From Styela clava (Eukaryota), in NCBI RefSeq assembly GCF_964204865.1, contig NC_135250.1:27776001-27840000 (forward strand): a stretch of 64,000 bases of DNA, given 5' to 3'. Shown piece by piece: positions 2,617 to 63,700 of the stretch (position 1 is its first letter; every line of letters begins with the position of its first letter). The notes under the pieces were generated by a model, which was not told the origin of the DNA, ran no database searches, and saw only the letters and a list, made by a program, of their open reading frames with translations. The position numbers were made by a program, and so were the translations under genes.

Positions 2617-5546
2617 CTACATATTATAAAGCACGTTGTCTACCATTTCTATTTCAGACTCAGCGTTTTTGGAAGTTTTTGCGTTTTTGTTGACGACGCT
2701 ATACATATCTTCAATGTTTTCGGGGTTGTTTGCTTCCTTTGTCTCCTCGTTCTCTTGCTGCATTTCGTTCTCTTGCTGCATTTCGTTCTCTTGTTGCATT
2801 TCGTTCTCTAGCTGCGGTTCCTTCTCTTGCTGCGGTTCAGATTCCAGAGACATTTTCGAGGTTGTAGACAATAATTGACGATACTTTGCCAGTTTGCGGT
2901 GAAATCTGCAACATATAAAGCAGAGATAACGACGAGCCTAAAGACGTACGAATGAGTGGTAGACTACTACTATTTATACTAACGTTGATATCAATTTTTG
3001 CTTGGAAGTGGTTCAAAAGTCGTTTATACATCACACACTTGAAATTTATCTTGTATCATTGGTATGAACTGAACTATACTTCCTACAATTTGTAAAAAGG
3101 TTACCAAGTTATTAAAAAATTTTTAAAAGAATTCAGCGCTGTTTGTAAAAATTTGAGGCTGGAACCAAGCAGAATTGAAAAAACTCAAGGATGGCTGATT
3201 ACCTCAATGTTAGGGTGATTATGAGAAGTACTGCTAAACCAAGCAAGACTGTTGGAACAATGATCAAAATTGTGTTATTCTTTGTATTACAGTTTCCATC
3301 AAAACCGTTGGATGTTTTTAAACTTTCTTCACCCGTAGACACTGGAATTAATGTTATGTCATTTTGTGTATTGTTCATCAAATAAACAGGTTGAGTTTCC
3401 GTCGGCCCATTCTCTGAATTTGTTGTGTGATAGTTAGGTGTGGTGGGAACATTATTCCTTGCCGTAGTTTGTTGATGTTCTGCAAATAGGTACCGTTCAG
3501 TTTTATTGGTGGTAACTCTTTTTTATATTCAAGTATGTGCATATATCAAAAATCGCCTCTAAATTTAAGATTTATATAAGAAATTATGGTATCAAATATT
3601 TAAAAGTTTTCTTTTGAAAAGTGCGTTTGTCTCGTTTTCATTAATCTAAAATTACATTCCCTAATGTAATTATTGACTAGTTGAGTATGCTAATGTACTG
3701 TATATTTAAAATATTGTATATACTTTACTATTCTACAGAATTAGCAAATTATATTATTGTTGCAGCTCCGCAAGCATACAAGTTACTTCCCTAAAAAATA
3801 TATGTTTTTAGTTTTCGCGGTTATAATATTTTCTACTTCAGATTACTGCAGAAGTTGAAAGAGGCTAATTAAATTTGCTTATACCTAATTTGTTGCTTTT
3901 ACCTGTGTTGTTTAATATTCCGTATATTGAAAAGATGGAGAATTCTTGAAACTTATGAGAGTATCCATTCTCTGTTGTATATGTTAAATTAAGTGGAAAA
4001 ACTTTATTTTTAATAATATGATGGTGTATCCCATTACATCCGTCAGTAATAATTTCATCAGATACAGTTTTTGTGGCAAAAAGGAAACAGCCGTTGAGTT
4101 TGGAATCACACAGTTCTGTATCGACTAATCCAGCTGAAACATAGTGCTTAGTTGTTGCCTTTACATGATAACACCTCCTATAATTTACCATATACGGCAC
4201 TAATGTGAGTATCGGGTCTTAATTTCACATATTGTATCCGATATATTGGTTACCTATGTAGAGATATCGACAATAAAACAGCATATCGCAAGCAACGTTC
4301 GTTGTATTAAACAAATAAAGTGATACATTCTATGACTGCTAATATGATGAATGGCGGGAACATTATCACTTGTAATTTTGAGGGAAATAATTTATTCTTT
4401 CGAAGTTTGAAATACGTAACTGAGACTAACACATTTGTAATTCCTAATTAACGCAACAGGAGGTCATAAAGACAACTATTAAACTATTAAAAACTAGAAA
4501 AGTAGTGCATTTCAGCAACGTATAACACATAAACATGTTTCGAGAGAAATAACCACATGATGAAACAAAATTACCTGGAGACAAATTAATCGAAACAAGC
4601 CTTGAAGGCGAATACAAAACAATATTTTTATATTAAATAAAAGTTGCTTAATTGTTACAAATAAACACAAAAAATATATTCACTTTGAATACCAGTAATT
4701 TTCAGAGATCCAATGCACTGACTGGTTTGACTGAGATTATTTTTAGTAATTTTAACTAACAAGAAGCTGTTAACAGATGTGCAACTATCGGTTTTGAATT
4801 CCCAAATACTGTGAATATCCCCTACTCTTCTGAAAAATAAATTTTTAAAATGACTATTCAAACTATATTTTCATGTTCATATAAAGCTGAGTAATCATAA
4901 AATTTTATTTCATCATTTTTTAAAGTTTTTCTAAGTTTTACATCATTATGTTGATTATTATTCATGTTGATTTTTTTATAGAACTGGATGCTTTATTTGC
5001 ATCAATTTTCATCAAAACTTAATCAAAAATAGAGAAATGTTTACTTTACACTTGCTCCTACTTCAGGTGTAGAACATAAATCAACGTTAATCTGACTCAG
5101 ACCAATAGATTGGTGAAGAATTGCTGCCACTATCGGATAACAAAAAGGAATATTAATTGCGTTGAATATTTTTTCTCAGACCAACAAGTCATAAATCCGA
5201 TCTGAGTGTTTGGGTTTTAAATACGGGGTTTGAGCTTTAATTAAAGATGAGTTCGTTACTGTAAACGTACAGTTATATACAGTGCTAATGTAAACTATCT
5301 CACTTGGTGCTAATATATTATAAATAAAAAGTCAATATTGAAAAATTCATATCACTCACTCTAGAAAATTCGGAATTTATTCAAATTTGAATGAGGCATT
5401 TTAACTCAACAAATTTATTCACCGTACTTATCGAAGTAGACAACATTTATTCACTTATATACATTATTGAGAGTCACTAATGAAAAATTATATATATAAA
5501 CAAATTACTCACCTATAAGTAACAATACCCGCGTATTGAAATGCAT
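2617..5546 (-). CDS. Class A receptor A1: type-I membrane protein with signal peptide, CUB-like ectodomain, Thr-rich stalk, TM and Q/E-rich Tyr-motif tail (~350 aa, apparently intact)
   Basis: Six exons, all GT-AG and phase-consistent (1,2,1,1,2): 5546-5513, 5129-5045, 4829-4693, 4133-3903, 3479-3203, 2905-2617, totalling 1053 nt. Starts MHFNTRVLLLIVAAILHQSIG; TM ILIIVPTVLLGLAVLLIITLTL; tail ends EDMYSVVNK...MVDNVLYNM*. The exon 3 donor could alternatively be 9 nt further (4684). Confidence 0.85.
2745..2835 (-). repeat. Coding 18-nt minisatellite (QQENEM-type units) in the class A tail
   Basis: Tandem catttcgttctcttgctg units on the + strand; variant arrays are present in A2, A3 and A4. Confidence 0.85.
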
Positions 5547-6313
5547 GTTTTTCAAATATGTCAGCTCCCGTCTCTTGCAACTACACCGAAGAACTTCATA
5601 TGGTTATTCCAAAGTATATATTCGAAAACGTAAATGTCGGCCAAGGCAACAGTTGTTACGCATGCGTTCATCTGAGTACCCATGTACCTATTCATTTATT
5701 ACGTGTACTGAAGCAATGAATAATGAATGCCAAATGCAGACACGTAATGGTAAAGTACGTTCTATGTTCATTAGTAATGTGAGATATCACTGCCTCGTGC
5801 ACGAACGATCATCTGCAACAGTATACTAAGGTTCGTTTTTTGAAATCATGATCTGACTAATGTAAACCAATGATTGAGATCGAGTCTTCCGAACACAATT
5901 TTGAATCGGAAATATTGCTAATTTAGTTCCTGAACACTTTGGATATTTTTAATTTACTTAGATTACTCTTCACCCATTATGTATTATTAAAGTGAATTGG
6001 CCAAATTATTAACACTGATATGAAACAAGAGAGCGATGGTCAAATATATGAACACGAAATGGTACAGGTATTCAATTTGTCACAATTTGGCACCGTATTA
6101 AAGCTGAGCACATATTTTAACTTACGCAAAAGCAAAACCATCACAAGGAGTGCAATTTTTAATTTTGACGACGTCATCGCACACAAAAAATAAGTCTCAT
6201 AGAGACCACACATACTTTTGAGAAAGAGCAATGCCCAAATATGTGGCCGGAAAGGTTGGTATTGGTACTGGTAGGGTAAGTCTTAAGCTTAGCAGGACTT
6301 TGACTGAAAGATT

Positions 6314-7262: not shown

Positions 7263-7564
7263 AGATGAAAATATTTACAAAATAATAAAAAAGTTTAAAT
7301 TCAATTGAAAATGTATACAGCAATTTACATATAAAATTGTTTAAGCCAAAACTCTTTTTTTCTAAAGGTATATCAAATATATATTTATTACACACTATAC
7401 TTTCCCAAATTTCTCTATGTCTACAGTCTTCTAGACATTTAACTTGGCTCATTTAAATTTCAAGTTAAATGAGAACAAATACTGAATGAAATGGCAAAAT
7501 AAAATACACGAAGGAGTACATGGAACATCAAAATAGTCTCTAAAATACGTATTGAGAAAAAAGG

Positions 7565-7805
7565 GGTACTTCCGTAGTATGTGCAACAAGATGGTGGACA
7601 CCGGAACGCAGTATGTGTATCAGGTTAGAGTTAGGCATTAATTCAGGTACAAATACTACACGAGTCACGGGCTACAGGCTAGTCCCCGAACTCATAATAG
7701 AGCTAAAATAAGGAAAATTGGAATAAAATGATGGTCTAACCCTAGCCTGGTACACATACTATGTTCAGGTGTCCGACATCTTGTTACACATACCACAGGA
7801 GAACC
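7565..7805. mobile_element. MITE with long (~70-bp) terminal inverted repeats containing GGTTAG-like motifs
   Basis: The left arm ttccgtagtatgtgcaacaagatggtggacaccggaac...caggttag mirrors the right arm ctaaccctagcctggtacacatactatgttcaggtgtccgacatcttgttacacatac. It lies 3' of each complete class B gene. Confidence 0.75.
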
Positions 7806-7968: not shown

Positions 7969-10900
7969 TCAATATTCAATATCATGATACGGGTAAAAAT
8001 TAGTCGGTTCGTATACAGATGATCCATAAGGTTGTTGCAATGAATCGCTCGTTAAATATTTAATCTGATGCCTTGGATCGGGATGAGAAGTCATTGCAGA
8101 ATGCTCGTGACAAATAGGCAATTCGTATCCAGAAGTTTCGGTAGAGCTGGTTGTCTTTGATTGTTTAATAGTGTTGTTTTCGTAGATTCCGTGTTCACAT
8201 TCAAACTGAGCTTTTGACATATTTGTCATACTTGGTTTCTCATTATTCCGGATAGCAGTTGTATTCCTGTTGTTTTTCATCCTAAAATAATAAAAAAAAG
8301 TGTAGATTTTCAAGCTTCGGTGGTATCTCAATTTTTTGCAAGTCTATCTATTTCGGCGCCTGAGCCATGTAGATACAACAGTGATGCGAACATTTCGACA
8401 ATGCTAACGAAAGCAAGTTCGACAATTAATGAATTTAATGTTTCTTGATTATGATTTTGACCTACTACTACCGATCCCTGATGTCGTACTAACAACTCAA
8501 CCACTTTTGAATCAGCTAAAAATAATACCTCTCTAACACAGTTTATATTATTCAAAATAGAAAATCCATTTTTTTAAAACTGCTTTGTTGATATGTGATA
8601 CGAATACCCATATGGACATCTGAAAGCCGTTAGATTACGAGAGTTTCCAGATTCGAAAACAATAGGAAATAATTTGGATGCTAGCTCTTTTAAATCAATG
8701 CCCTTGTCTGTGCAACAGACACATGTGTGACATCACGATGACCAGTGTTCACCAAAATACGCGTAAAACATAGAATGAGCATTTTAGTTAAGCGTTAATA
8801 AAATGACATATGAGCCACAATAAAATATGAGCCACGCTACAAAAACGAAATGTTGCAACTGCGCGAGAAGGAGATTTTACTGCGCAAATGTTCTGGTGGT
8901 ACTGCGCAATTGCGCAATTGCGCAGCTTAGAGGGAACCTTGCTGATGTGTAATGCGGATATTTATATGAACATCAGAAAGCGGGCAGAGTCCGAGAGGAG
9001 TCCTTGTTTGTAAAATGTTTATCCAACATCCAATAGTGATTTGAATCTTACCTGTTAGCAAGAACAATGATAATGATCACTGCATTAACGAAAAGAATGC
9101 CAAGTACAATAGTAGAGATGAAGAGGATTTTATAAGTTTCTCTGCCAAAGTCGTTGCTACTGGTAGTTGGTTTTGTTAATTTCTCAACTTCAGTTTGTTC
9201 AAACGACGAAGATGTTGCGTCATTTGGGGATAGGTGCCTGTTGCCTTTAGTAGTTGCATTTTCATCATCTTTAAAAGCTGCAAAGTTTATATAATTCACC
9301 ATATTTGATTAATAACATTCATTACAACATTCTCAATTCTGATATTGACAGCATTAAAGTTTAGGAGATAAAATTCACACGAATTTTAATTTTGTTCTAT
9401 TTAATTTTTTCCTAAAGTATTTTGTCGATTTTAGTAAAGCCTGAAAATGTGTTTGTCATTTTATTTATATTATACAAAAGCAATAACTAAGTCGTGCTAA
9501 TGAATGATCGCTCAAAACGCCATAACTATTCAGTTTGGTCTAAATTAGAATAAATTCCTTGTTTATCATTAGCTTATTTGTTTTACCTTTGCTGCTTGTT
9601 TTTACATATATTGAAGGAATGCGAAAATCTTGGAAATGATCATAGAAACCATCCTCTGTCTTATAAGTAATATTTACTGTAAATATATTGCCTTCAATGA
9701 TATGAGGAAATACCCTAGCACATCTATGGGTAATAGTTTCATTATTCAAATTTTTTGGAGTAAAAGGGAAACAGTCGTTTGGTTGGGAATCACGTAGTTC
9801 TGTGCTAATTCGATGAAAAAATTTGCTATTTGCTGTACGGAGCATTTTATATAAATAGATTGATAAACATTGAATACAATAGGAAGAACTTAAGTTGAAA
9901 GAGACTAATTATATTCGCTTATACCTAATTTGTTGCTTTTACCCGCGCTGTTTAATATCCGGTGTATTAACTGGATATTGAATTCTTGTACTTCACGAGA
10001 GTAACCATCTCCTGTCTTATATGTCAAATTAATTGGAAAAACATTATCTCCAATGATAGGCATCCGTCAGTAATAGATTCATCAGATACAGTTTTTGAGG
10101 CGAAAAGGAAACATTCGTTGAGTTTGGAATCACACAGTTCTGTATCCACTAATCCAGCTGAAACATAGTGATCAATTGGTGACTTTACACAACAGTACAT
10201 AAAATACCTCCTATAATTTACCATATACGACACTAATTTGAGTATCGGGCCCTAATTTCACATATTATATACGATATATTGGTTACCTACGTGGAGATCT
10301 CGACAAAAAAACTGCAAATCCCAAATATATTTCGGTTTTTTTTAAACAGACAAAGTGGTACATTCTATTAGTGTTTATATGGTTAATGGTGGGAACATTA
10401 TCGCTTGTAATTTTGAGGGGAATTTATTTATTTTTGCGAAATTTGATGTGCATAACGGAGACTAACACAGTTGTGATTCCTAATTAACGCAACAGCAGAT
10501 CATAAAAACAACTATTAACCTTTAAAAACTATATAAGTTGTGCATTTATGCAACGTATAACACATAAACATGTTTTGAGAGAAATAACCACATGATGAAA
10601 TAAAATTACCAGGACACAAATCAATCGAAACAAGCCTTAAAGGCGGATACAAAACTATATTTTTATAATAAATTAAAGTTGTTTAATTGTTACAAATAAA
10701 CACGAAAAATGTATTCACTTTGATTACCAGTAATTTTCAGAGATCCAATGCACTGACTGTTTTGATTGAGATTATTTTCAGTAATTTTAACTAACAAGAC
10801 GCTGTTAACATATGTGCAACTATCGGTTTTGAATTTCCAAATACTGTATGTATCCCCTATTCTTCTGAAAAATACAATTTAAAAATGACTATTTAATCTA

Positions 10901-11640
10901 TATTTTTATGTTCGTATACGGCTGGGTAATCATGAAACTTCATTTCATAATTTTTAATAGTTTACCAAAATAAAATGGTTCTAGATTATTCATCATTCTG
11001 TTGATTATTATTCATGTTCAATTTAAATTTTATTGGATTGGATGCTTTATTTGTATCAATTTGTTATCAAAACTTAATCAAAAAATAGAGAATTGTTTAT
11101 ACCTAAAACTTGCTCCTGATATAGGGGTAGAACATAAATCAACGTTAATCTGGTTCTGGCCAATAGATTGGTGAAGTATTGCTGCCACTATATATTAACA
11201 AGAAAGAATATTAGTTATGTTGAATATTTTCCCTCAGAACCGACAAGTCATAAATCCGCTCTATGGGTTTGAGTTTAAAATACGCGTCATATTATTAAAG
11301 ATGACTCAGTCAAGTCTGCGAGCAGTTATATGCAAGTGCAGATGTCAACTGTTTCACTTAGTACTAATTAGTTATATATTTGTTAAAAAAGTTATAAAAC
11401 GTTGAAGTTCCGATTTTCTCAAAACCTCGATGGATTTCTAGATTTCATATCATTCACTCAAAATGGTTTTGGATTCATTCAAATTTGAATGAAGCATTTT
11501 AACTCCACAAATTTATTCACTGTACGTAGTGAAGTAAATAAAACATATCCACTTATCTACATTATTGAGAGTAACTAATGAAAAATGATACGAACTAATT
11601 ACTCACCTATAAATAACAATACGCGCGTGGAAAGATGCAT
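7969..11640 (-). CDS. Class B receptor B1 (~346 aa only if exon 4b is used; exon 4a is frameshifted)
   Basis: Exons 11640-11607, 11187-11103, 10864-10728, 4a 10157-9943 (215 nt, net 16-nt deletion), 4b 9832-9587 (246 nt, open, AG/GT intact), 9277-9052 (stalk + TM ILFISTIVLGILFVNAVIIIIVLA), 8281-7969 (tail IYENN, GYELP, VYEPT, PYHDIEY*). Confidence 0.7.
8716..9001. mobile_element. B1-specific intronic insertion containing a probable hAT-type fragment
   Basis: Absent from the same intron in B2-B5. It is flanked by an imperfect duplication ccttgtctgtgcaa / ccttgtttgtaaaa. The internal ends cagtgttc... and ...ttagagggaaccttg resemble hAT TIRs. Confidence 0.45.
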
Positions 11641-12483: not shown

Positions 12484-14871
12484 ATTGACTATTCCAGGTT
12501 CCGAGAATTGCTAGAAATTTGTCGGTTCGTATTCGGATGATCCATCAGGTTGTTGCCATTGCTCATTAGGTATCCCAATTGATCTGGATGAGTAGTCGCC
12601 CCAGAATGATCGTCTAAAATAGGTATTTCGTATCCAGAGGTCGCGGTTTGTATAGCAGATTGTATTTGTTCATTAATGATATTGTTTTCGTAGATGCTTG
12701 GATTATTTTGAAACTTTAGGAAAATTTGCGGTATGCACATCTGGTTTCATTGTTCTTGGGAGTAGAAGCAGTCTTGCGGTTTCGCTGTCTAAATCAAAAT
12801 TCATATATTTTCTAGTATGTTTACATATAGGTTTAATGCCGAATCAAATTTGGGAAGTATGTCTTCGGGTTTACCAAACCCAGGATTGTTCACGTTGGGT
12901 ATAGAATAGTGCACATCCGCTTATAGCTTGTCGGTGTAATTTTACGACGTTTCGAATCTCTATGCAAAAACAACTTAACAATTTGATGTCGAAATCCTAA
13001 GCAAACGAACTCCAGCCCACCAAATCAGCAAATATATCGTTCTGCTAACACCGATTGTGCTCCATACCCCCGACACGAAAAAAGCGGCAATCGTGCGCCA
13101 TGTGTTAAGTAATTTTAACAAGACTTCTTAAAGTAGCCCAGATGCGTCATTATGTCTATTTATTAAATCTGTATCCATATTAAAATCCTAATCTCAGGCA
13201 ATGTCCATACAATTTCATACATTTGAGACAAAAAACGGTTTCAATATCTGACTAGGACCGGTGATGGGAGTATGAGGCCGTGGTTAGTCATATAGTCAAA
13301 AGCTGGCTCCGTGACTTCCCTTTTTCGAGATATAAACATGAAATACCTTGTCTCTCACCTGTCGTATTTATGCCCCCAATGAATCCAAGTCAAATAGGCT
13401 ATTCGAATAGTAAATTGCTGATATTTGGATATTTTGCTAGCACTAATCGGTAACCAGTAAATAATTAATTTTATTTTATTTTATGTTACCGAAATAATCT
13501 TGCGTGTTAGGTAATATGTAAATTCTTTTAAAATCAGCTTGGCTGGTATTAAAGTTTGGTACAAACGTTTCCGGCCCGTATTGAATTTCGTCATGTGGAA
13601 GTGGCCCGTGAAACAAAAAAGGTTGGGCAGGCCTGGTGCAAGGAGTGGCTAGAAGGGTATTTTCTGGAATTTTGTTGAGCTCTGTGGTTGGGCCCGAATT
13701 TGTTATGCTCTGAATATGAAACCTCCGTGTCATCTGAGCTTTGAATTTTAGTTTTTATAGAATCTTATTGTTGATGCAAAAAATATTACAATATATGTAC
13801 TACGGTAACTAAGCCATATTGCCAAGTATTGTAATGGCAAAATCAATAGTGACAAGGCTGTATCATTTTAACAAATTCGACTTCGCTGGTGGCGATATTT
13901 AGGCAACCGTGCTAAAAACGTTATGAAAGTAGGTGAATTAATGATGATAATTTGCCCGATGTTTTGCTGGCTGTTTTTAAAATCAAGCCTGGGTCTTATC
14001 TGATTGCCAAGTCAATTCAGAAAGCCTGTACCATCTTGTTAGTGTGGTTGGCGACTTTTCTTTCTTTCTTCACATTCCCTCTAGGCATGGAATAAAGAAA
14101 ATGGCCTTCTCACTTGATCTCTATAGAATTTGCGTTTGAATGTCGCAGTAATTTGCACGGTATTTTTCTGGCTAGTTTTACTGGCTGGACGTGAGTGATT
14201 TTCATTATATTCCTTCTAGGAATTGTAATGATGTAAATTCCCTTCTAATTTGATATCTATGCAATTTACATTTGAATAACGAATGTTGTAGTAATGAATG
14301 TATTTCCATATTAAAACGTTACACGGAAAAGAGGCTAAGAATACACACAAGAAAAAGAAACATGCACAAGCATTGTGCAAGTCAACGAAATGTTCATATC
14401 TATACTTGAAAAACAGTTCTTTTGGAGTGGCTGCATTTGTTGCTTTAGCTTCTTATTCGAAAGAAAAATCTGCCAAATCTTCGTCTGCAGAATCAGATAG
14501 GAATCCTGTGTATATAAACGTCAATCATGAGATACATGTTCTACATTGTCTGTCTTTAGCTATCTCCGGCTAGATGAATATATAGATGTGTATATTTATT
14601 CACGATATTAACATTTCTAAGTTTATTTTCCTATGCGTTTTCGCTTCAAGATCTATCGGGATGTGCACTCGTTACTTCGAGGTTTCAACTCCAGATTACC
14701 ACGTTCCACTGGCTCAATCTCCAATCTAAAATGATTTATTTTTGCGGATTAGTCGTCTGAAAGCATTGTTTCAATTTAATTCAAATATTAGGCATCTTAT
14801 TAAATAAATCTGTACCGACCTGGACTCCGACATCCAGGATTCCAAAATGCCTCAATGGAGCATAGATAAAT

Positions 14872-49541: not shown

Positions 49542-52146
49542 GTTTTTCGAATATGCCAGCTCCCGTCTCTTGCAACTACACCGAAGAACTTTATTTGGTT
49601 ATCCCAAGGTATAGATATGAAAACGTAAATGTCGGCCAATGCAACAGTTGTTATGCATACATTTAGCAGAGTATTTATGTAACTACTCATTTATTACGTG
49701 TTTTGAAGCGATGAATATTGCTTGCCAAATGAGGATTAGTAATTGTAAAGTGAGCCTTATGTTAATTGGTAATGTGTGAGATCACTTCCTCGTGCACAGA
49801 CAATCACCTGCAACAGTTTACTAAGGTTCGTAATTTGAAATCATGACCTGACTGATTTTATTCAATGATTGAGATCGAATCCTTCCAATTATCCAAACAA
49901 AATTTTGAATTGGAAAAATTGCTCATTTAGTCCCTAAACACTTTGGATATTTTTAATTTACTTAGATTACTCTTCACGAATTATGTACTTTGAAAGTGAA
50001 GTGGCCAAATCATAAACAATTCTATGTATATATATATATTGAAACAAGAGAGGAATGGTCGAATACATGGATACGCAGTGTAATTTGTCACAGCAGCCAT
50101 ACAGGCACTATATCGCAGCTGAGCACCATAATTTAATTTACGTAAAAGCGGAAAGGTCTGGCATCGGCACTGGTACGGTAAGGCTTCAGCTAAGCAGCAC
50201 ATTGACTGAAAGATCGTTGGACATGCGTGGCAGAATAAAGTCTCACCAAAACAATCATCTGTGCGATGTTTGGACATATTCGCTTGGTATATTACCTTCA
50301 AAAAACGAATATATATATCCAATAACTAACTGCAGTACACATCCAAACTAAACTAAAATTAAATATCTGATCATTCACAAACACCAAATCAATCGTAATA
50401 AGCATCGTTACAGGTCACGCCTTAGCTAAACAGTGATCAACAGCTGTGTTAAATTTTGTGATAACAAAAAACATTGGATGAAATGTAGAACCCCACAGAA
50501 CCACACGGCTCAAAGATATTTGATAACATATAAAAGTAACACTTTCCCGGAAACTACCTTCATGTCATCAAGATTTGAAATCTATTGGTCCATTACTTTT
50601 GTTCACAACAATTTCAGGTGTAAATATTTCTTACAATTTATTTCCGTCTTGTTGCTGCATTTTGATTTGGGTGTGTATCGGCCGACGCATTTTTTTGATG
50701 AGACTCGCTAATGTTTTTGTCTCACTTTAAAGTTTTGGATACTTAATTTCCCATTTTATTTGATATTCAAGCAAAAGTATTTTCGTACTGAATTTTTTTT
50801 CAATCCTATACGATTTTACATTTCCAACCGCAGATTTTCCCGTTCCATAAAAAAAGAGCGTCGGTCAACTTATGTTTGCTTTATTACAATATAACCATTG
50901 GGTTAGCGGTCTAGGACCAATTGCCGAGATAAAAATCGCAAGCGATCTTTCTCGGGTGTGATTGTGTTTCAATTTTGAAGCTTAATCAATCAAGCCAACA
51001 AAATTATAATTGTATATCTAGGAATATACCTACAGACAAATTAGGTAATTGTTGATAATGATTGTTGCCACGAACTTAAACTAATATGTTCCAACATTTT
51101 TGTTTTGGTTTATACAATTATAACTTGTCTCATAATTTTAATTAAATTCTAACAGAAAGAATAGTATATTTAAGCAGAATTTTACAAATAACATGTTAAT
51201 AAATGTTAATGGTAAATAATAATCACTGAATAGCCGTTTTAATTGTACTGTGGTATCTGAAGATAAAAAATATCTTATTTATAACCTTAAATTTTGTCAA
51301 TATGTTTTGAGATAGAAACACCTCAATTGCCTCGTCAGAGTGATCAAAAACCGAAACCATGACAACAAAATACTTTAACGTAAATTGAGAAGTCACGCGA
51401 GAATAATAAACGATCTATTACATCCTGTTTGTTGCACTCTTGTATTTCTCATCACAAATTTCTATTGATCCAAATAATACCCTAATAAATTATGTCCATG
51501 CTTTCTAATAATTGTTTGTATCAAAGTTGCTCTTTAAGTTTCTATAAATTATAGTTCAGATCCGGGAAAGCAAGGACGATGTGCCGCACTATTATTTCAG
51601 ATTAAAAATAAATATCGCATTGCAATTAGAAGTTCGTTCCACACTTGTAATTGAGCCAGCATTCATTCGATCATGCAAACCCACAATATTACAGATCGCC
51701 AATACATTTTATCAATATTTATTATTATGCAGTGGGATAATCGTTGCAGACAAGCATTTAATATGCGATTGAAAATAATCTTTATCTGAACGTTGTGGTA
51801 TGAGATTGCAATTAAGATTACAAGTTATATTTCATTTTTTCAATATCTATTTCATATATATGAATTTATTTACAAAAAAAAAAATTAAATTAAATTCAAA
51901 ATGTATATAGCAATTTACTTAAAAAATTGTTTTAGCCTAAACTCGTTTTTTCTACATGTATATCAAATATATATCGATAACCCACCATACTTTCCCAAAA
52001 TTTCTATATGTCTCCTCTAAACATTTAACTTGGCTCATTTAAATTTCAAATTGAATGAGAACAAATATTGAATAGAAAGGCAAAATAAATATACGAAGAG
52101 TACATGAAACATCAAAATAGTCTATAAAATACGAATTGAAAAAAAG

Positions 52147-52378
52147 GGTACTCCCGTAGTATGTGCAACAAGATGGCGGACACCGGAACGTGGTATGTGT
52201 ATCAGGTTAGGATTAGGCCCTAATTTCAGGTACAAATACTACGGGAGTTACTTGCTAGTTCACGAACTAATAGATCTAAATAAAGGAAAATTGGAAAAAA
52301 AGAATAGTCTAACCCTAACCTGGTACACATACTATGTTCAGGTGTCCGCCATCTTGTTGCGCATACTACGAGAGAACC
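52147..52378. mobile_element. Long-TIR MITE copy 3' of B5
   Basis: Best-preserved arms: ctcccgtagtatgtgcaacaagatggcggacacc / ggtgtccgccatcttgttgcgcatactacgagag. Confidence 0.75.
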
Positions 52379-52583: not shown

Positions 52584-55500
52584 TCAATATTGAATATCAT
52601 GATACGGGTGGAAATTTGTCGGCTCGTATTCAGATGATCCATCAGGTTGTTGCAATGAATCACTCGTCAAGTATTTGATCTGATGCTTTGGATCGGGATG
52701 AGAAGTCCTTGCAGAATGCTCGTGACAAATAGGCAATTCGTATCCAGCAGTTTCAGTAGAGCTGGTTGTCTTTGATTGTTTAATAGTGTTGTTTTCGTAG
52801 ACTCCGTGTTCACATTCAAACTGAGCTTTTGATATATTTTTCATACTTGGTTTCTCAATATTCCGGATAGCAGTTGTATTCCTGTTGTTTTTCAACCTAA
52901 AATAAAAATAAAGTATAGATTTTCAAGCTTTCGTATTATCTCAAATTCTTGCAGGTCTAACTATTTCGGCGCCTAAGCCAGGGTCGGCCAACCTTTTTAG
53001 CCAACGGGCCACATTTAGTTTACTAATAATTGCACGGGCCACTTAACATGGTAAATATTTTCCAGTTTTGCTACACTGACTAAAAGTTAATGAAAATGCA
53101 AACAAAACCCTCGAATCAAACTTTCTCAATAATAAGAACATTAAAAAAACGAAGATACTGTAAAGTCAACAAAGGTATTTCTACGCGTAGATATTTTGGT
53201 GTGAAGTTTGACAAAATTTCAATATTCGCTGAAATGGACGATGTAGCTATGCGAAGCCAATTGTTTATATGACTGTCATAAATTAGTGATTTCACAGGTA
53301 ATTCAAAGCGCCAAAGCAATCCAAAGTTGTCAACTCATCAATATTTTGCTTCATTGCTAAAACATCAAGGATTTTATGCATGCACATACCACGCCTAAAC
53401 ACACAGCATTGGCAATTATCATTTATGTCCCCAGCAGATTTGACCAAGTAATATTTGGTTGGTGCTACATTTGAACGAGAGACCACGTGATAAAATAAAA
53501 GAAGATTGTCTCACAGATGAGATAACGTTGAAGAGAGTAGTAGAAGACCCAAGTGTGTAAGCGACTATTTAAGTATCGATATCTTCCAGTTGGTTTCGAT
53601 TCCAAATGGTACTCATCGCTCGTTTGAAAGGGCTAGCAGAGCGCATTTCAGGATAATGAACAAATTTTGTGTATCAAATCTTTATATTAACTACATCACT
53701 TGAAAATTAGAAATTTTACGCAATTTTTTTTATTTATTTTCGAAAATACAGGGCGGGCCACTCGAAACTCCTCGGTGGGCCAAATGTGGCCCCGCGGGCT
53801 ACGGGTTGGACGACCCAGGCCTAAGCCTTGTAGATAACACCGTGATGCCAACATTTCAACAAGGCTAACGAAAGCAAGTTCAACAATTAATGAATTAAAG
53901 CTTTCTTGATTATGATTTTGACCTACTACTACCAATCCCTGATGTCGTACTAACGACTCAACCACTTTTAAATCAGTTAAAAATATTACCTCTCTAACAC
54001 AGTTTATATTATTCAAAATAAAAAATCCATTTTGTTTTAAACTGCTTTGTTGATATATGATACGAATACCCATATGGACATCTGAAACCCGGCAGATTCC
54101 GAGAGTTTCCAGATTTGAAAACAATAGAAAATAAATTGGATGCTAGCTCTTTTAAATCAATGCCCTTGTTTGTGCAATGTTTATTCAACATCCAATAGTG
54201 ATTTGAATCTTACTTGATAGTGAGGACAATAATGATGATCCCTGCAATAACGAGAAGAATGCCAAGTACAATAGTAGAGATGAAAAAGATTTTCTTTGTT
54301 TCTCTGCCAAAGTCGTCGCTACTTGTAGTTGGTTTTGTTAACTTCTCAACTCCAGTTTGTTCAAACGACGCAGTTGTTGCTTCATTTGTGGGCAGGCGCG
54401 TGTTGCTTTCAGTAGTTGCAATTTGAACATCTTTATGAGCTTATTGAAAGTTTACATAATTCAATACTAAACATCACAACATGCACAATTACAATATTGA
54501 CAGCATGAAAGTTTATGAAATAAAAACCACACTAATTTTATTTTGTTCTACTTTTTTTTTAATATGTCGTCGATTTTGGTAAAGCCCAAAAATAAGTCAA
54601 GGTATTTTGTTTATAGTATATAAAAGCAATAGCTAGTGCTAACGAATAACCGCTCATAAGGACATAACTAATCAGTTCGTTTTAAATTACAATAAATTCC
54701 ATGTTCCATTAGTGTATTTGTTTTCCCTTGTTTGCTGCTTGCTTTACATAAATTGAGGGAATGCGAAAATCTTGGAAATGATCATAGAAACAATCCTCTG
54801 TTTTATAGGTAATATTTATTGTAATTATATTGCCTTCAATGATGATATGAGGAAATATTCTAGCACATCCGTCAGTAATAGAATCATTGAATACATTTTT
54901 GAAGTAAAAAGGAAACAGTCGTTTGGTTGGGAATCACAAAGTTCTGTGCTAATTTAATCAAAAAAATTGCTAATTGCTATATGAAGCATTTTATAAAATA
55001 GATTGGTAAACATTGAGAACTAACATAATAACTAGAGACTATTTAAATTTACTTATACCTAATTTGTTGCTTTTACCTGTGTTGTTTATTATCCGGTATA
55101 TTGAATGGATGTGTATTTCTTGTAATTCAGAAGAGTAACCATTCCCCGTCTTATATGTCAAATTGATTGGAAAAATATTGTCTCCACTGATATGACGGTG
55201 TATTCCATTACATCCGTCAGTAATAGATTCATCAGATACAGTTTTTGAGGCAAAAAGGAAACAGTCGTTGAGTTCAGAATCACACAGTTCTTTATCCACT
55301 AATCCAGCTGTAACATATGTATCAATTGGTTTCTTTACATGATAGTACATGATAATACCTCCTATAATTTACCATATACGGCACTAATGTGAGTATCGGG
55401 TCCTATTGTCAAATAATATCCGATATATTGGTTACCTACGTAGATATCTCGGTAAAAAACAACATATTCCAAGTGTGTAATTTTGAGGAAAAATATTTAT

Positions 55501-56718
55501 TTTTTCAAAATTTGAAATGCGTAACTGAGACTAACACCTTTATAATTCTTAATTAACGCAACAGGAAATCATGAAGACACCTATTAAACAGCATATTAAA
55601 CCGAAAAATAGGATACGTGTGCATTTATGCAACGTATAACACATGAACATGTTTCGAGAGAAATAACTACATGATGAAATCAAATTACTAGGACACAAAA
55701 TAATCGAAACAAGCCTTGAAGGCGGTTACAAAACTATATTTTTATAATAAAAAGAAGTTGTTCCATTATTACAAACAAACACGAAAGATGTATTAACTTT
55801 GATTACCAGTAATCTTCAGAGATCCAATGCACTGATTGTTTTGATTGAGATTATTTTCAGTAATTTTAACTAACAAGACGCTGTTAACCGATGTACAACT
55901 ATCGGTTTTTAATTCCCAAATACTGTAAATATCCCCTGCCCTTCTGAAAAATACAATTTGAAAATGACTATTTAATGTATATTTTCATGTTCATATACGG
56001 CTGTGTAATCATAAAATTTCATTTCATCATTTTTAAAAGTTTACCAAAGTAAAATTTTCCTATCTTTTACATCATTCCGTTGATTATTATTCATATTAAA
56101 ATTAATTATAAATGTATTTGATGCTTTATTCGTATCATTTTTTATCGTAATTTATTAAAAAATAGTGAAATGTTTACCTTACATTTGCTCCTGATTTGGG
56201 CGTAGAACATAAATCAAGGTTGATCTGGTTCTGGCCAATAGTTTGGTGAAGTATTGCTGCAACTATCGGTGAACAAAAAAGAATATTGGTTATGTTAAAT
56301 ATTTTTCCTCAGAACCGACAATTCATAAATCGCTTTATGGGTTTGAGTTTAAAATAAGCGTCATATAATTCAAGATGATTCCGTCAAGTATGCGAGCAGT
56401 TATATGCAAGTGCAGATGCCAACTATCTCACTTAGTACTAATTATTTATATACTTGTTAAAAAGTCAAGTTATAAAACGTTGAAGTTCTGATTTTCTCAA
56501 AACCTCGATGGATTTCTAGAATTCATATCATTCACTCAAAAATGTTTTGGATTTATTCAAATTTGAATGAAGCATTTTAACGCAACAAATTCATTACCTA
56601 TACGTAGTGAAGTAAATAAAACATATCCACTTATATACATTACTGAGGGTTACTAATGAAAAATGATACGAACTAATTACTCACCTATAAATAACAATAC
56701 CCGCGCGAAGAGATGCAT
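52584..56718 (-). CDS. Class B receptor B5, apparently intact via exon 4a
   Basis: Exons 56718-56685, 56262-56178, 55943-55807, 55307-55077, 54430-54214, 52896-52584, in phase. The exon 4b remnant (~54726-54976) has an early TAA and a GG donor. A hAT element sits in the last intron. Confidence 0.85.
52979..53818 (-). mobile_element. Non-autonomous hAT (Charlie-like) element, 840 bp, 8-bp TSD
   Basis: TIRs cagggtcggccaacc / ggttggacgacccag. TSD gcctaagc at 52971-52978 and 53819-53826. The minus-strand remnant HINNWLRIATSSISANIEIL resembles the C-terminus of Charlie-type transposases. Empty sites are present in B1, B2 and B4. Confidence 0.88.
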
Positions 56719-57337
56719 GTTTTTCAAATATGTCAGTTCCAGTCTCTTGCAACTACACCGAAAAACTTTATATATATAATTATTCCAGGGTATAAATTTT
56801 GAAAACGTAAAACTTTGTCAAAGCGACAATTGTTACGTTGCATTCATCAGAGTGTATCTATACTCATTTATTACGTGTACAAAAGCGATGAATCTTCCTT
56901 GCGAATGCAGATACGTAATTGCAAAGTACGTTCTATGTTCATTAGTAATGTATGAGATCACTTTCTCGTGTGTAGACGATCACCTGCAACAGTTTACTAA
57001 GGTTTGAAATTTTGATCTTACTAATGTAATTCAATGATTGAGATCGAATCTTCCAAACTAAATTTTTTTTTAGTAATATCCATCATAAGATCCCAAACAC
57101 ATTTTGTGGGCTTCATAGTTTATTTAGAATACTATCCACAAATTATGTATTGAAAATGAAAAGATCAAATAACTAAAAAAGAGAAAAATGCTGATATATA
57201 TAGGAAACGAGGGCGAGAAAACGTAAAACAAAATATTTTATCCACAATTTCCCTAAAACTACATTCCGAAAAAAGCTGGAACTATGGAACGACTGCCGTA
57301 AATGGGTCTAGGTATAGTTTAGTACCACAAGTACCTC

Positions 57338-57560
57338 TGGTGGGCGTGGCGTAATAATTTTTGCATACGCCATTCATGAGACCGCCCTAACTACGTCATC
57401 AAAAATTTACGTCAGTACTGCGCCACAATCACGCCATATAGCTTGCCGAAGCCAGATATCTCTCTCGCATTGATGTGATTGTGACGTCGCAGTGACCTTT
57501 TTTTGTATGACGTAGTGTAGTGGGGCAGGAATGAAATATGCAAAAATAGCACCGCCACTA
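57338..57560. mobile_element. Palindromic MITE-like element copy
   Basis: Homologous to 12260-12483. Confidence 0.55.
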
Positions 57561-57564
57561 TTGA

Positions 57565-60500
57565 CTATTCCAGGTTCCGAGAATTGCTGAAAATTTGTCG
57601 GTTCTTATTCAGATGATCCATCAGGTTGTTGCAATGAATTGCTCATCCAGTATTCCAATTGATCTGGATGAGTAGTCGCCTCAGAATGATCGTCTGAAAT
57701 AGGTTTATCGTATCCACAGGTCGCGGCTAGTATAGCTGGTTGTATTTGTTTATAAATGATATTGTTTTCGTAAATGCTTGGATTATTTTGAAACTCTAGG
57801 AAAACTTGCGTTATGCACATTTGGTTTTTCATTGTTCTTAGGAGTAGAAGCAGTCTTGCGGTTTCGCTGTCTAAATCAAAATTCATATATTTTCTAGTAT
57901 GTTTACATATAGGTTTGATGCTGAATCAAATTTGGGAAGTATATCTTGCGGGTTTACCAAACCCAGGATTGTTCACGTTGGGTATAGAATAGTGCACGTC
58001 CGCTTATAGCAGGACGGTGAAATTTTACGACGTTCTCATCTCATGCAATGTCCATACAATTTCATACATTTGTGACAAAAAACTGTTTCAATGTCTGACT
58101 AGGACGGATGAAGGGACTACGAGGCCGTGGTTAGTCATAATATAGTCAAAAGCTGGCTCCGTGACTTCCTATTTTTGAGATATAAATATGAAATACCTTG
58201 TCTCTTTCCTGTCGTATCCATGCCCCCTATGAATCCAAGCCAAATAGGCTATCTGAATAGTAAACTGCTGATATTTGAATATTTTGCCAGCACTAATCAG
58301 TAATCAGTAAATAATTATTAACTTGACTGATTTTATGTTATTGTGATAATCTTGCGTTTTATATAATATGTAAATTCTAATGAAATCAGGGCTTGGCTGG
58401 TATTAAAGTTTGGTACAAACGTTTGCGGCCCGTAATGAATTTCGTCAGTTTGGGCAGATCTGAGGCAAGGAGTTGCTAGAAGGGTATTTTCTGAAATTTT
58501 GTTGAGCTCTGTGGTTGGGCCTGAATTTGTTATGCTTTGAATATGAGACCTACGTTTCATCTGAGCATTGAATTTTAGTTTTTGTAGAATCTTATTGTTA
58601 CTCCAAAAAATAATACAATACACGTACTAAGGTAACTGAGCCATATTGCAAAATCAATAGTGACAAGGCTGTATCAATTTATCAAATTCGACTTTGCTGG
58701 TGGCGATATTTAGGCAATCGTGCTAAAAACGGTATGAAAGGAGATGAATTAAGATGATAATTTGCTGTTTGGTTTTAAAATCATGCCTGGACTTTGTCTA
58801 ATTGTTATCGAGTCAATTCAGAAAACCTTACCGACATGCTACCGGGGTTGGTGACGTGAGTGTCTTCCATTATATTCCTTTTATGAATTATAATGATGTA
58901 AATTCATTCTTATTTGATATCTATGCAATTTGCGTTTGAATAGCAAATGTTGCAGTAATTGCACGGTGCTTTACGGGTTGATTTTAAATTCAAGCCTGGA
59001 CTTTGTCTAACTATTATCAAGTCAATTCATAAAGCCTGGACCGTCTTGTACGATATTGCTGTTGGTGACCTGATTGTCTTTCACTAATTACATTCTTTCT
59101 AGGCATTCTATATATATGTAATTTGCGTTTGAATACCGAATGTTTCAGTATGAATGTATTTCCATATTAAAATGTTACACAGAAAAAAACTAAATATACA
59201 CACAATCATAAGAAAAACGCACTAGCATTATGCGTGTCAACGAAATGTTCATATCTATACTTCGATTTGAAAATACAGGTCTTTTGGAGTGGCTGCAATT
59301 AGTACTTTAGCTTCTAATTCGAAAGAAAAATCTTCCAAACCTTCGTCTGCAGAATCAATTTCGACGTCCCACCGAGATAACCGAGATAGGAATCCTGTGT
59401 ATATAAACGTCAATAATTAGATAAATGTTCTACATTGACTGTCTTTAGCAAGCTCCGCCCCAAGAACACTTTGTCATTATGAGAAGATATCCCTTCTATA
59501 GATGTATATAATTAGTCACAATATTAATATTTCTAAGTCTCTTTTTCTGTGCGTTTTCGACCTCATAAATAATGTTTTCCATGAGTATTTTCAAAAGCAC
59601 ATGATCTATCGAGATGTGCACTTCGAGTTTTTTTTTGGATTTCCTTGAGCGACCACTGTTAATCCGTTATTTGAACACAATCTTTATCGTTCTTGCATGG
59701 ATCATTTATCTTTGTTCTTTTGCTGAAAAATGAAAAAGCTATTGAATACAGATATATATTGTTCGTTTGTGGAACACATAATTAAGTCTGTCGTGAACAG
59801 TGCCGGATTTACCTTTAGTCTAGGGACCCCATGTCATGTAAATTAATAAAGAATAATGCCTGTTTAAAATGTTACAAAACCTGTTATTTATTGTTTGGGT
59901 CATTTCATTAATTCTTATCCCAAATTACTTAGAGTTCGAAAGATTAAAACAAAAATAATCCCAAAAGCGTAATATGCTGTTTCAAATTGACAGTTTTAAC
60001 GCGATAAGGCCTTTATTTTTTGAATAGAAATAATACAAAAATACTACGTATTGGTATCTAAGATTGCACCGCAATTTTCAACGTTTATTTTTCGTGAAAT
60101 ATGGCATCCAAGAAAAGAACTTGGTTAGATGACTATATGCAGTATGGCTTTAGCTGCTCAACTGAACGTGACTCCAACGCGAAAATGACATGGGAATTGG
60201 TCTTTCTGAAACGAAGCCACGTATCTCTCAGTTGGGAACCGAAAAACAGCAGCAGAAGGGTCACTAACAAATCTATTTAATGAATAAAGTCTACTGTTTG
60301 TTGCAATTTATTCAACCAGGGGTTTTTCGGTTGTAGATACTCTTTTGACAAAGCATGTCATTCAAATTTAACCCGAAAAATTAATCTATCCCAACAGTAA
60401 GGCAACGAATTCAAATTCTATCATTTGGAGACGGTTAAATTTTTTATAAATTTGTACAAAACCGGCTTACCTTTAATAAATTCAGGATGCGCTCTTACTT

Positions 60501-61046
60501 CAAAAATGTGGGGTTCGAGAAGAGCTTGCGGAATAGCGTAGGGGTTCGACAGGCTCACAAAGATTAAGAACCACTGCGCCAGGGGAAACGTAAGGAAAAT
60601 ATTTCAGTGAAGTAAAAAGCAGACTTTCATTCAAGGTTCGATGGATGTACCCGAGTTATTGTGCCTGACGAATGACAACGACGAATATTCTGGGTAGTTT
60701 GAACACCGTCTCCGACCTACATGCCAAGTTTTGTCCGGGTTCGGCCCGACAGTTTTCAGGGAAATGCTCATTTGCGCTCTCTGATCATCCAGTCACGCAG
60801 ATATAATGACAACACTTCGCCGCACAGATTGTCGGCTAAAATTCTGAAATGGCGCAAGTTAAGCATACTGCTGTATTTGTACGGTAGGGGTAATAGCGCT
60901 TTTGGGAATTCAATTTTGGGAAAACGATACCACTGTTTTAAATACTGGCCTCATAACCCCGATAAGATATCGACCTACCTGAACCATGAAGTTGATGCTT
61001 GGATTAGAAGTCCTACAATGCAAATGAATAAAATCATTCTGTGCAT
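57565..61046 (-). pseudogene. Class C decayed receptor paralog C3 (more divergent 5' half)
   Basis: Signal exon 61046-60979 (MHRMILFICIVGLLIQASTSWF). The next exon, from ~59722, reads KRTKINDPCKNDKDCVQITD then TAA. Open exon-like GFLSRLSRWDVEIDSADEGLEDFSFELEAKV at ~59280-59394. TM-like stretch at ~58574-58650; B-like tail remnant at 57605-57870. Confidence 0.5.
60101..60576 (+). mobile_element. Internally deleted hAT/Buster transposon remnant
   Basis: ATG at 60101 gives MASKKRTWLDDYMQYGFSC (Buster/Charlie-type N-terminus), followed within ~50 bp by LSETKPRISQLGTEKQQQKGH* (typical C-terminus, stop 60265-60267). Right TIR-like end aagattaagaaccactg at 60560-60576. Left TIR not found. Confidence 0.7.
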
Positions 61047-61699
61047 TATGTAGCTTATTATATAAAAGTTCCTGTAAAAGAATCCACAACTGAATTATAT
61101 CCACCTGTATAGAAGCTAGTCCTATTGTGCTAAACAATTAAGGACATGAAAAATTACACTAGTTTTGCTGATGTTTACTTAATAATATTTATTAAACATA
61201 GTCGACTTTTTTCAAATCGGGGAACGAATGACCAAATCGAGTTGTTTTTTTCAATGTTTTGGTTTCATTGCCTAAGATTGGTATGGTGGCCAGCTCGTTT
61301 GGCCTAACTTGCAACTAAGAAATAACGGGCACCGTCGCCTCAAGGTTGTAATATATTCAGTAGCATATGCTTGACAAAAAATTCCGGTATTTTCAAAACA
61401 TAGCAAGATGGAAAATACCATCGGTAATTTAGGTGTCTTGATGATGATAAGTCATTTCCATTTGCAGGATATTCTCCGTCCTATTTGCAGGATATTTGAA
61501 GGCATGTTTACTCTATTTTTAATAGAATATCTTCGAAAGAATAAAAATTGGTGTGAATTGAATATGATACGGGCAATGCTATCGACATATGTTTTGTCGC
61601 TATTCAGCATCAAGGGTAGCATGTAGTATAATGGAGGGGAACAACAACAACAACAACAACGATATTTCCAAATCATAGCAGCTCACTGCACCAATGGCA

Positions 61700-62100
61700 A
61701 TAATTTAGATGTCTTGATGATGATAAACCATTTTACATGGACATATGGGCAATGTTTGAGCGCTGATTCAATTAAGGTGGAAAATATCAATGGTATTTTT
61801 GGTGTCTTGATGTCTGATAAAGCATTTTCCACTGACATATTGGCGCTGATTCGAAGCAAGGTGAGAAATATCAATGATGTTTTTGTGGGTGTCTTGATAT
61901 CTGATAAAGCATTTTCCACTGACATATTGGCGCTGATTCGAAGCAAGGTGGGAAATACCAATGGTATTTTGGATGTCTTCATAATGATAAACCATTTTCA
62001 ACTGACATATTGGCGCTGATTCGAAGCAAGGTGGGAAATACCAATGGTATTTTGGATGTCTTCATGATGATAAACCATTTTCAACTGACATATGGGCGCC
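61700..62100. repeat. 84/85-bp satellite, about 4-5 diverged units
   Basis: Same monomer at the paralogous position 3' of gene A4. Confidence 0.85.
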
Positions 62101-62942
62101 TGTTGATCGCGTCATCGTCGTATTTGTAGGCATTTTTACTTTATTTTTTATTAGAATATTTTTGATAGAATATAATTTCAATAGAATATTCTACGGGCAA
62201 TGCTTACAACATGTTTTTTTCTATTTAACAACAAGGGTGGCATGCACTATAATGAAGGGTTACAACAGCACATATTCTTCAATAAAATACGATAATCACA
62301 AAAGAGCTTCACCTACAAACAGTTCAAATTCGAATATTTGATTGTACAAGATCTATTCCAAAAATTGGAACCATTACCAGAATAAGTTTTTTAAAAGGTT
62401 CAATTGGAAGCCGATCCTCGAGAAAGAAAAAAACTCTTTTATACGTCACCCACTGGCAAATATATTAAAAACAAATTAAAGCTTGTATGGGAAAAATCTA
62501 AGAAAAAATAGGGTTACAATTGATAGTTCAAAGTTTTTGAGCATTCACTTGGAGAAAATATTGTGAAATATATTTGAAAATGCATATACATTGGTTGGGC
62601 TAGATATTAAGATGCTCCTCGTTTTCCGCAGTAATATTGTTATACATTATAGTGTTTTTGAGATAAAACGAATGCTTTTGAATGATAAAATACAGTATAT
62701 GTACGCCACTGATATAAAAAAAATAGAACTAAAGCCTAGATATCTGTACAACAGAGTTTAAAAAAAAAAAAAAAACATTTAGATAAAAGAAAACAACAGA
62801 TCAAAATATTTAAAAGTCTTCAGCATTATCTAAATTACTAAAATTTGCTGTTACGTCAGTAACGCTAAATATTAAAAAAACGTATGTGGTTGTCCGAAGT
62901 AATATCATCAAATCTGAGTGTTTTGAGATAAAATGAATGCAT

Positions 62943-63700
62943 CTACATGTTATAAAGCACGTTGTCTACCATTTTTCTTTCCAACTCAGCTTTTTTTGAA
63001 GTTTTTGCGTTTTTGTTGACCACGCTATACATATCTTCAATGTTTTTGGAGTTGTTTGTTCCATGTGTTTCCTCGTTCTCTTGATGCACCTCGTTCTCTT
63101 GCTGCGTTTCGTCCTCTTGCTGAGGTTCGTGTTGCGGACAAATTTTCGAGCTTGTAGATACTAACTTGCGATAATATGCCAGTTTACGGAGAAATCTTAA
63201 ACACAGAAGCTAAAGATAACGACCAGAGAAAAAAATCCGAATGAGTAGTAGCCTACTGGAGATTTGACAGTCGGTTGCATGAAAATATAGGCAGAATCTT
63301 GTATAATAATCTATGCTGAAAAATTGGCATGAACTAAATCAAACTTCCTACAATTTATAAAAAATAATTTTTTTTTCAAGTGTTCACTAATATTTTATAA
63401 ATTTATATTCAAATTACCTCAATGTTAGGATGATTATAAGGAGTATTGCTAAACCAAGCAAGATTCCCAGAACGATTATCAAAGTTAGAATATTCTTCGT
63501 TTTACAATTTCCACCATAACCTTTGGTTGTTTCTAGAACTTCTGCGGTCGTAGACAGTGATATTGAGGTTAAGCCATTTTGTGTATCATTCCCCAAGTTA
63601 TCAGATTCTGTTGCAGTCGGTCCATTCTCTGAATATTTTGTGTGGTAGATTGCGTTAGATGTGGTGGAAACAGTATTCCTTGTTGTAGTTTGTTTAATCC
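62943..63700 (-). CDS. Class A receptor A4, last two exons (5' part lies beyond the window)
   Basis: Exon 63700-63418 (stalk + TM ILTLIIVLGILLGLAILLIIILTL) and exon 63195-62943 (FLRKLAYYRKL...EDMYSVVNK...MVDNVLYNM*), both open and in phase. Confidence 0.85.

Follow-up and report, generated by a model that had tools for sequence, protein, structure and literature searches.

The ascidian Styela clava (host genome 377 Mb, 33% GC) carries, in the 64,000-nucleotide stretch of contig NC_135250.1 (G000:C1) from position 27,776,001 to 27,840,000—‘the window’ in what follows—nine copies of a six-exon gene for a type-I membrane protein. The copies were located by self-BLAST and exon mapping, and all of them lie on the minus strand. 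They fall into two classes, ‘A’ and ‘B’, which share their signal peptide and ectodomain and end in different tails. The evidence supports a paired architecture, comprising a shared, exchanging and fast-evolving ectodomain, two conserved tails, and a tandem cluster subject to birth and death. We consider it reasonably probable that these genes represent a lineage-restricted family of single-pass type-I glycoproteins with a CUB-like ectodomain, two tails, and wiring of the paired-receptor kind. A role in recognizing self and non-self, or pathogens, would be an inference by analogy. We do not assign the Styela family to any named family.

Along the window the copies occur in the order A1, B1, A2, B2, B3, B4, A3, B5, A4: four of class A and five of class B. 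A sequence-only reading of this stretch had described nine six-exon type-I genes with exons 1–4 of 34, 85, 137 and 231 nucleotides (nt) in both classes, and self-BLAST, exon mapping and the open spliced frames agree with that description. The same four sizes are held in 16 of the 21 copies of the wider cluster. Class B then ends in exons of 226 and 313 nt, in place of class A exons 5 and 6. In A1, the exons (34/85/137/231/277/289 nt) have AG/GT borders throughout, and the spliced frame is open for 350 codons. It encodes a signal peptide, followed by a domain of ~140 amino acids with six cysteines, a stalk rich in serine, threonine and asparagine, a transmembrane (TM) helix and a tail of 95 amino acids; the RefSeq models of sister copies share this architecture. 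The repeat units of the window measure 6–26 kb by self-comparison, and each unit, bounded by an 84-bp satellite, consists of a single A gene with between one and three B genes. The two classes are homologous in exons 1–4 and adjacent in each unit, as had been claimed. The further claim, that exons 5 and 6 do not align between the classes, holds for exon 6, where BLASTP finds no similarity at E ≤ 100. It does not quite hold for exon 5, the products of which match weakly (BLASTP E 0.007) in the membrane-proximal and TM part only.

The splice junctions, which that reading had left to be checked, were compared with Logan contigs of four runs from the same species, guessed to be RNA. These were aligned to the DNA at 82% likeness, a level chosen so as to let paralogues map as well; no run recorded as RNA contains the stretch, and the DNA runs reach only ~1× depth. 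Spliced contigs exist, and an absence of spliced transcripts can be set aside as an objection. Four predicted junctions are confirmed by such contigs. Exon 2 is joined, in a contig of run X9, to letters identical to exon 1 of A1; the contig joint 22968|23524 is the predicted border of exons 3 and 4; the last base of exon 4 (26741) is joined to the start of the class A stalk exon (22293; six letters unaligned); and the border of class A exons 5 and 6 is spanned by one contig, an exact match to the class A copy in locus L015. Contigs also fall on B2, at its class B stalk/TM exon as well as at exon 4. The class B acceptor and the join between its exons 5 and 6 agree with the RefSeq models P0006 and P0012, and the class B exon 4–exon 5 junction rests on these models together with splice-site logic. 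One RNA contig skips 40 nt, relative to A2, in the Gln/Glu-rich part of tail A.

Exons and introns have diverged to the same extent among 19 copies (p-distance 0.142 and 0.140, respectively), and insertions and deletions differ 35-fold in frequency, with 0.47 events per kb in exons and 16.5 in introns. At ~14% divergence, 15 of 16 ectodomain frames are open. The ratio of nonsynonymous to synonymous substitution rates (dN/dS; Nei–Gojobori) is 0.70 for the mature ectodomain (0.93 in exon 3, 0.58 in exon 4), ~1 for the B stalk/TM exon, and 0.37 for the B tail, in which all six tyrosines are retained. Within the ectodomain, ten-codon windows give a dN/dS of 0.1 in the core (codons 77–96) and values above 1 at codons 32–46, 52–76 and 142–151; the last of these has alternating positions with five to seven different residues. 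The pattern is that of a fast-evolving, frame-protected ectodomain on a conserved tail.

Ectodomain sequence also passes between the classes. In a tree of exons 2–4, A and B copies are intermixed. The tree of the 5′ half places the B copy L019 with A2 and A3 (100/100), and B4 with the A copy L011 (100/99), and forces at least three changes of class. The tree of the 3′ half places L019 beside B2 (100/98) in a clade of B copies only, and here the classes separate better. Since the half-trees disagree in this way, it is the N-terminal half that has passed from class to class, the tail-proximal half keeping to its tail. Such transfer of the ectodomain's 5′ half across the two classes fits the dynamics of paired receptors. 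A private conversion tract between A3 and B5 was considered and rejected as weak, its identical run being 51 nt against a median of 40.

Predicted structures support a CUB-like ectodomain at the level of the fold; membership of the CUB family by sequence is not demonstrated. Neither exons 3 and 4 nor 11 full-length members had a Pfam match to the CUB clan at E ≤ 1, and the Pfam searches with single exons and with these full-length proteins returned sub-threshold TM or low-complexity matches only, with no CDCP1 at E ≤ 1. A search of PDB sequences with the family profile likewise returned TM matches only, and none for the ectodomain. The AlphaFold2 model of P0001 (class A, main cluster) is an all-beta domain with a predicted local distance difference test score (pLDDT) of 60–84 over the ectodomain. 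That of P0009, a member of a second cluster and only ~24% identical, has the same strand order and a pLDDT of 82–93. When these models were compared with 48,161 chains by VIA-align, the CUB domain of Kremen1 ranked first for both: for P0001 with Z 9.1 and a root-mean-square deviation (rmsd) of 2.7 over 106 residues, and for P0009 with Z 8.7 and rmsd 2.5–2.6 over 99 residues. The next matches are the CUB domains of cubilin, TMPRSS6, Gpr126, neuropilin-1/2, meteorin and enteropeptidase, along with those of TSG-6, MASP, C1s, PCPE-1, spermadhesin and Neto2, followed by the SID1, GOLD and PliG sandwiches. CUB domains make up ~20 of the top 25 entries, in agreement with the CUB-like ectodomain proposed in the sequence-only reading. 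Foldseek puts the same CUBs on top (E ~1e-3 to 1e-2), and searches on ESM features reach CUB and CRF-BP clusters at 0.82–0.86, which we treat as leads only. The ectodomain has six conserved cysteines versus four in CUBs, the first pair being 26 residues apart, as in CUBs, and it is ~30 residues longer than a CUB domain.

The tails are unlike each other, and each is conserved in its tyrosines. Tail A (exon 6, 253–310 nt) is acidic and Gln/Glu-rich. It has YR[QK]L in its juxtamembrane part, along with a Gln/Glu-rich repeat that is variable, and ends with E-x-[MV]-YSV[VI] followed, 20–25 residues later, by a C-terminal [MV]VxNxLYN[ML]. Members of the second cluster, with ectodomains only 24–27% identical, retain both of these closing motifs. 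Tail B has six conserved tyrosines, in IYE[NS]N, GYE[LI]P, [KG]YL[TM]S, EYEPT and a C-terminal Y[HY]DIEY, and these motifs are kept in P0012. Both tail types persist in members with ectodomains just 24–27% identical. By motif class, tail B has YxN and YxxP sites and tail A has YxxPhi and NxxY sites; these would be sites for Grb2, Crk, PTB or AP-2. Neither [SILV]xYxx[ILV] nor TxYxx[VI] is present in any of the 16 tails scanned, nor is YxNM or an exact match to the core-2 motif of the Botryllus FcoR receptors. Short-tailed members (P0018, P0008 and P0004) are confined to the second cluster and to another species, and no charged TM residue was seen in them. The Gln/Glu-rich segment of the class A tail exons is an imperfect short repeat, the length of which depends on the copy (2740–2830, 21500–21620, 46560–46640 and 63040–63110).

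The window is part of a larger cluster, which we analysed from 3.2-kb loci centred on exon 4. Searches with exon 4 found 21 close copies (66–75% amino-acid identity) at 27.76–27.95 Mb, a divergent sub-cluster (41–50% identity) at 27.585–27.62 Mb, and one more copy at 27.950 Mb. The main C1 cluster comprises at least 27 copies across ~370 kb. The main cluster and the divergent sub-cluster each contain both tail classes, and the gene order of the former runs A B A B A B B B A B A B A B? A B? B A B B B A, and onward. A2 (L014, 27,798,739) differs by 1.3% from a copy 111 kb away (L026, 27,909,814) that has lost the same acceptor. This low divergence, together with the repeated A-B-B-B-A order, points to a recent segmental duplication of tens of kb; the L014/L026 pair may instead be a haplotype copy retained in the assembly. 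The tandem, birth-and-death organization claimed at the outset is apparent in the unit and segmental duplicates and in the damaged copies among them. The second cluster maps to another chromosome (contig C6, 18.19–18.51 Mb) and has at least ten copies. Its tails are A-like or short, the short ones (P0018 and P0008) being without tyrosines, and its intron layout differs, residues 12–87 being encoded in a single exon. Searches of the genome with the tails found both in the C1 region only, at a sensitivity that missed the short A-like tails of the second cluster.

Relatives elsewhere are few. A family profile made from 16 exon-4 peptides and searched against 1.84 billion representatives gave ten matches, of which eight are genuine; the other two, P0005 and P0010, were discarded, being long and repetitive and having matches to many unrelated families of Pfam. 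The genuine relatives are seven Styela clava RefSeq entries, each an ‘uncharacterized protein’, and P0004, the product of a 965-nt contig. P0004 is assigned to another species because its best identity to the Styela clava genome is no higher than 43%. When P0001, the family alignment or P0004 was used in word-based searches of proteins, the only matches were Styela clava paralogues and P0004 itself. All four of the intact window genes are absent from the protein databases searched, as are most copies of the family. No one-to-one orthologue of known function turned up among the relatives, and the remark in the sequence-only reading that the family was not recognized is borne out. We found no mention in the literature of six RefSeq locus names of family members, and no description of the family in the passages seen of the Styela genome paper or in the Halocynthia haemocyte paper.

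Four copies of the window (A1, B2, B4 and B5) are intact, and A4 has an open frame in the parts seen. A1 (2617–5546) has exons at 5546–5513, 5129–5045, 4829–4693, 4133–3903, 3479–3203 (stalk and TM) and 2905–2617 (tail A), with an open frame of 350 amino acids. B2 (25060–28387) has an intact frame of 341 amino acids, with exon 4 at 26971–26741, the stalk/TM exon at 26081–25856 and the tail at 25372–25060. B5 (52584–56718), likewise intact at 341 amino acids, has exons at 56718–56685, 56262–56178, 55943–55807, 55307–55077, 54439–54214 and 52896–52584. B4 (34735–38021) is open (343 amino acids) only if exon 5 is given an acceptor that lies 4 nt upstream of the normal position, at 35730. The 3′ part of A4 (62943–64000) has its stalk/TM exon (63700–63418) and tail exon (63195–62943) open; its exons 1–4 lie past the end of the window and are open in locus L023. 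The damaged copies are B1, A2, B3 and A3. In B1 (7969–11640), a 16-nt deletion shifts the frame of exon 4 (10157–9943), and the 3′ exons are intact (stalk/TM, 9277–9052; tail, 8281–7969). In A2 (21396–24360), the exon-5 acceptor AG is now AT, and the tail has two stop codons, 16 codons before its normal end. B3 (29272–31660) is a pseudogene with a stop codon in exon 2 and without a tail exon. A3 (46447–49541) has all six exons open; it has lost the GT donor of exon 1 and has a histidine in place of the last tail tyrosine.

The class B genes, and only these, contain a degenerate second exon 4, ‘exon 4′’, at 9607–9803 (minus strand) in B1, with further copies at 26436–26592, 36072–36224 and 54767–54947. 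In B1 it is open; B2, B4 and B5 have it frame-shifted and lacking a donor, and B3 has lost most of it. The frameshifts and lost donor rule out its use as a working alternative exon in B2, B4 and B5, and such use is possible only in B1. There, the regular exon 4 is broken, and exon 4′ is open with usable splice sites in the correct phase; it is without the first cysteine of the exon. In the L016 copy (G000:C1:27,760,941; LOC144425764, the source of P0001), the usual exon-3 donor is GC, and the RefSeq model of P0001 takes a GT 9 nt downstream, adding three residues. A1 has the same downstream GT, and alternative 5′ splice sites are therefore possible.

The unit boundaries are marked by the 84-bp satellite. 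Its array at 17388–20415 (strand not assigned) lies 3′ of an A gene, as do shorter arrays at 914–1761, 43791–44602 and 61760–62099. The satellite has a higher-order period of 169 bp, its arrays consist of 4 to 36 copies, and they are always 3′ of a class A gene. Upstream of each unit's first B gene are spacers (12700–17300, 38500–43700 and 57100–61700) of higher GC (0.36–0.38) in which no open frame exceeds ~96 amino acids; they hold a frame-shifted relic of the class B tail exon and, probably, transposon remnants. The relic upstream of B1 (12512–12695, minus strand) is ~72% identical and frame-shifted, and further relics lie upstream of B4 (38888–39068) and B5 (57590–57775). Directly 3′ of each class B gene is a repeat of ~200 nt with terminal inverted repeats, resembling a miniature inverted-repeat transposable element (24640–24880, 7536–7749, 34279–34475 and 52120–52322). 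Contigs over this repeat sum to a depth of 10^3–10^4 in all four runs, with many opposite-strand joints; the element is therefore very abundant genome-wide, and either transcribed or multi-copy. An Rfam search of the window gave no match.

The vertebrate KIR, LILR and Siglec-5/14 receptors resemble the Styela genes in carrying near-identical ectodomains on different tails, in forming tandem clusters, in undergoing duplication and pseudogenization, and in exchanging ectodomain sequence between the two classes. They differ in their scaffold, which is immunoglobulin (Ig) or lectin rather than CUB-like, and there is no homology. The C1 cluster, moreover, has no inhibitory motif of the immunoreceptor tyrosine-based kind (ITIM) and no short-tailed member with a charged TM residue for an ITAM adaptor; both of its classes are long-tailed. 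CDCP1, DCBLD1/2, neuropilin and Kremen stand for a class of CUB-domain membrane receptors with tyrosine-phosphorylated tails. The Styela proteins are, like them, single-pass type-I molecules with a CUB-type ectodomain, and their tail is tyrosine-rich, with YxxP in class B. The Styela family differs from these CUB receptors in having one domain only, and in forming a large two-tail tandem cluster.

The Fester/FcoR receptors of Botryllus schlosseri, a host that also belongs to the Styelidae, are likewise large clustered type-I families with conserved tyrosine motifs (PMC12582321). The FcoR core-1 motif (YxxI/L/V) occurs in Styela tails, and tail A, like FcoR core-2 tails, has two C-terminal tyrosine motifs, spaced by 20–25 residues in tail A versus 29–33 in FcoR core-2. 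The core-2 motif itself, [A/D]VYxxV, has no exact match in the Styela tails; the nearest is DMYSVV, in the first A motif only. The FcoR ectodomain belongs to the Ig superfamily (IgSF), whereas the Styela ectodomain is CUB-like, and the Styela tails are without ITIM or hemITAM (a half version of the immunoreceptor tyrosine-based activation motif, ITAM). Botryllus expresses the relevant adaptors, and the tails of its IgSF receptors carry ITIMs, hemITAMs and ‘core’ motifs, including C-terminal pairs (PMC12582321).

The units of the cluster multiply by unit and segmental duplication, and decay through pseudogenization. Exchange of the 5′ half lets both classes display related, putative binding domains, each keeping its own tail. 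If the Styela genes encode paired receptors, the system might operate as follows. The CUB-like domain would bind an extracellular ligand, and the tails, phosphorylated on tyrosine, would recruit different SH2/PTB adaptors or sorting machinery. One recognition event would, in this way, be wired to two intracellular outputs, as in paired receptors.

A number of observations weigh against this interpretation. Z scores of 8–9 are barely above the usual background of 7–8 that unrelated models often reach; what favours CUB is that the two models give consistent hit lists. The class B exon 4–exon 5 joint is not among the joints shown by the contigs, the depth of which is low in all four runs, themselves only guessed to be RNA and of unspecified tissue. 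The dN/dS of the ectodomain is 0.7 over the whole domain, not above 1. About half of the window copies are damaged. No canonical ITIM, ITAM, hemITAM or immunoreceptor tyrosine-based switch motif (ITSM) is present in the 16 tails scanned, and neither A nor B has a charged residue in its TM helix; opposite signalling is therefore not indicated by known motifs. The YxxPhi and NxxY motifs of tail A fit endocytic sorting equally well. The ‘tyrosine-signalling tails’ of the sequence-only reading are accordingly correct as to conserved tyrosine motifs, and lack the canonical signalling motifs and the charged TM. The reading of the cluster as paired receptors is upheld by matched ectodomains on two tails and by exchange between the classes, and the inhibitory/activating signature that such receptors usually display is missing.

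It is possible, but rather unlikely, that the genes encode endocytic, scavenger or adhesion receptors, with tail A serving for sorting, tail B acting as a scaffold of the Grb2/Crk type, and the expansion reflecting a diversity of ligands from diet, tunic or development. The YSV[VI], YRQL and NxLY of the A tails and the YEN and YE[LI]P of the B tails, with no immunoreceptor motif among them, are what such receptors would lead one to expect, and endocytic and matrix receptors (cubilin, neuropilin and Kremen) are among the top fold matches. Tail A, with YxxPhi and a C-terminal NxxY, is presumably comparable to the tails of the LDL (low-density lipoprotein) receptor and integrins. However, a substitution rate like that of introns, rapid turnover with inter-class exchange, and confinement to a single lineage are more typical of recognition families under conflict than of uptake receptors with a housekeeping task. 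Far less probable is that the cluster is in the main a repeat in decay, left by a gene that once functioned, leakily transcribed and without present function. Four or five of the nine window copies are damaged, dN/dS is 0.7, contig depth is low, and most copies are absent from protein databases, all of which would suit decay. It is difficult to reconcile with indels 35-fold rarer in exons than in introns, 15 of 16 ectodomain frames open, a B-tail dN/dS of 0.37 with six tyrosines kept, both tails present in distant paralogues, and correctly spliced transcripts.

Within the paired-receptor interpretation, a more specific proposal can be made by analogy. The colonial styelid Botryllus uses Ig-type FF/FcoR receptors, and we know of no receptors for allogeneic reactions in solitary ascidians. 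The Styela family might be an independently evolved, polymorphic, non-Ig counterpart of FF/FcoR, in which matched A and B receptors would use non-canonical tyrosine motifs to send opposing signals and would mediate allorecognition by haemocytes (graft rejection and contact reactions); we think this unlikely in so specific a form. Gamete recognition—self-sterility or sperm–egg binding—in place of somatic immunity appears quite improbable. Ascidians are hermaphroditic and have loci for gamete recognition that are polymorphic (PMC7018956), spermadhesin CUBs are among the fold matches, and the clusters evolve fast; yet the known self-sterility genes of ascidians come from other families, and long tyrosine-bearing tails are not known there.

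As paired receptors, these genes would be candidates for recognition in solitary ascidians: at least 37 genes in two clusters, with a defined ectodomain fold, two conserved tails with few tyrosines to mutate, and clear signs of exchange across the classes. Even without an immune role, this is a large family of receptors with two tails in which a CUB-type domain serves as the variable module.

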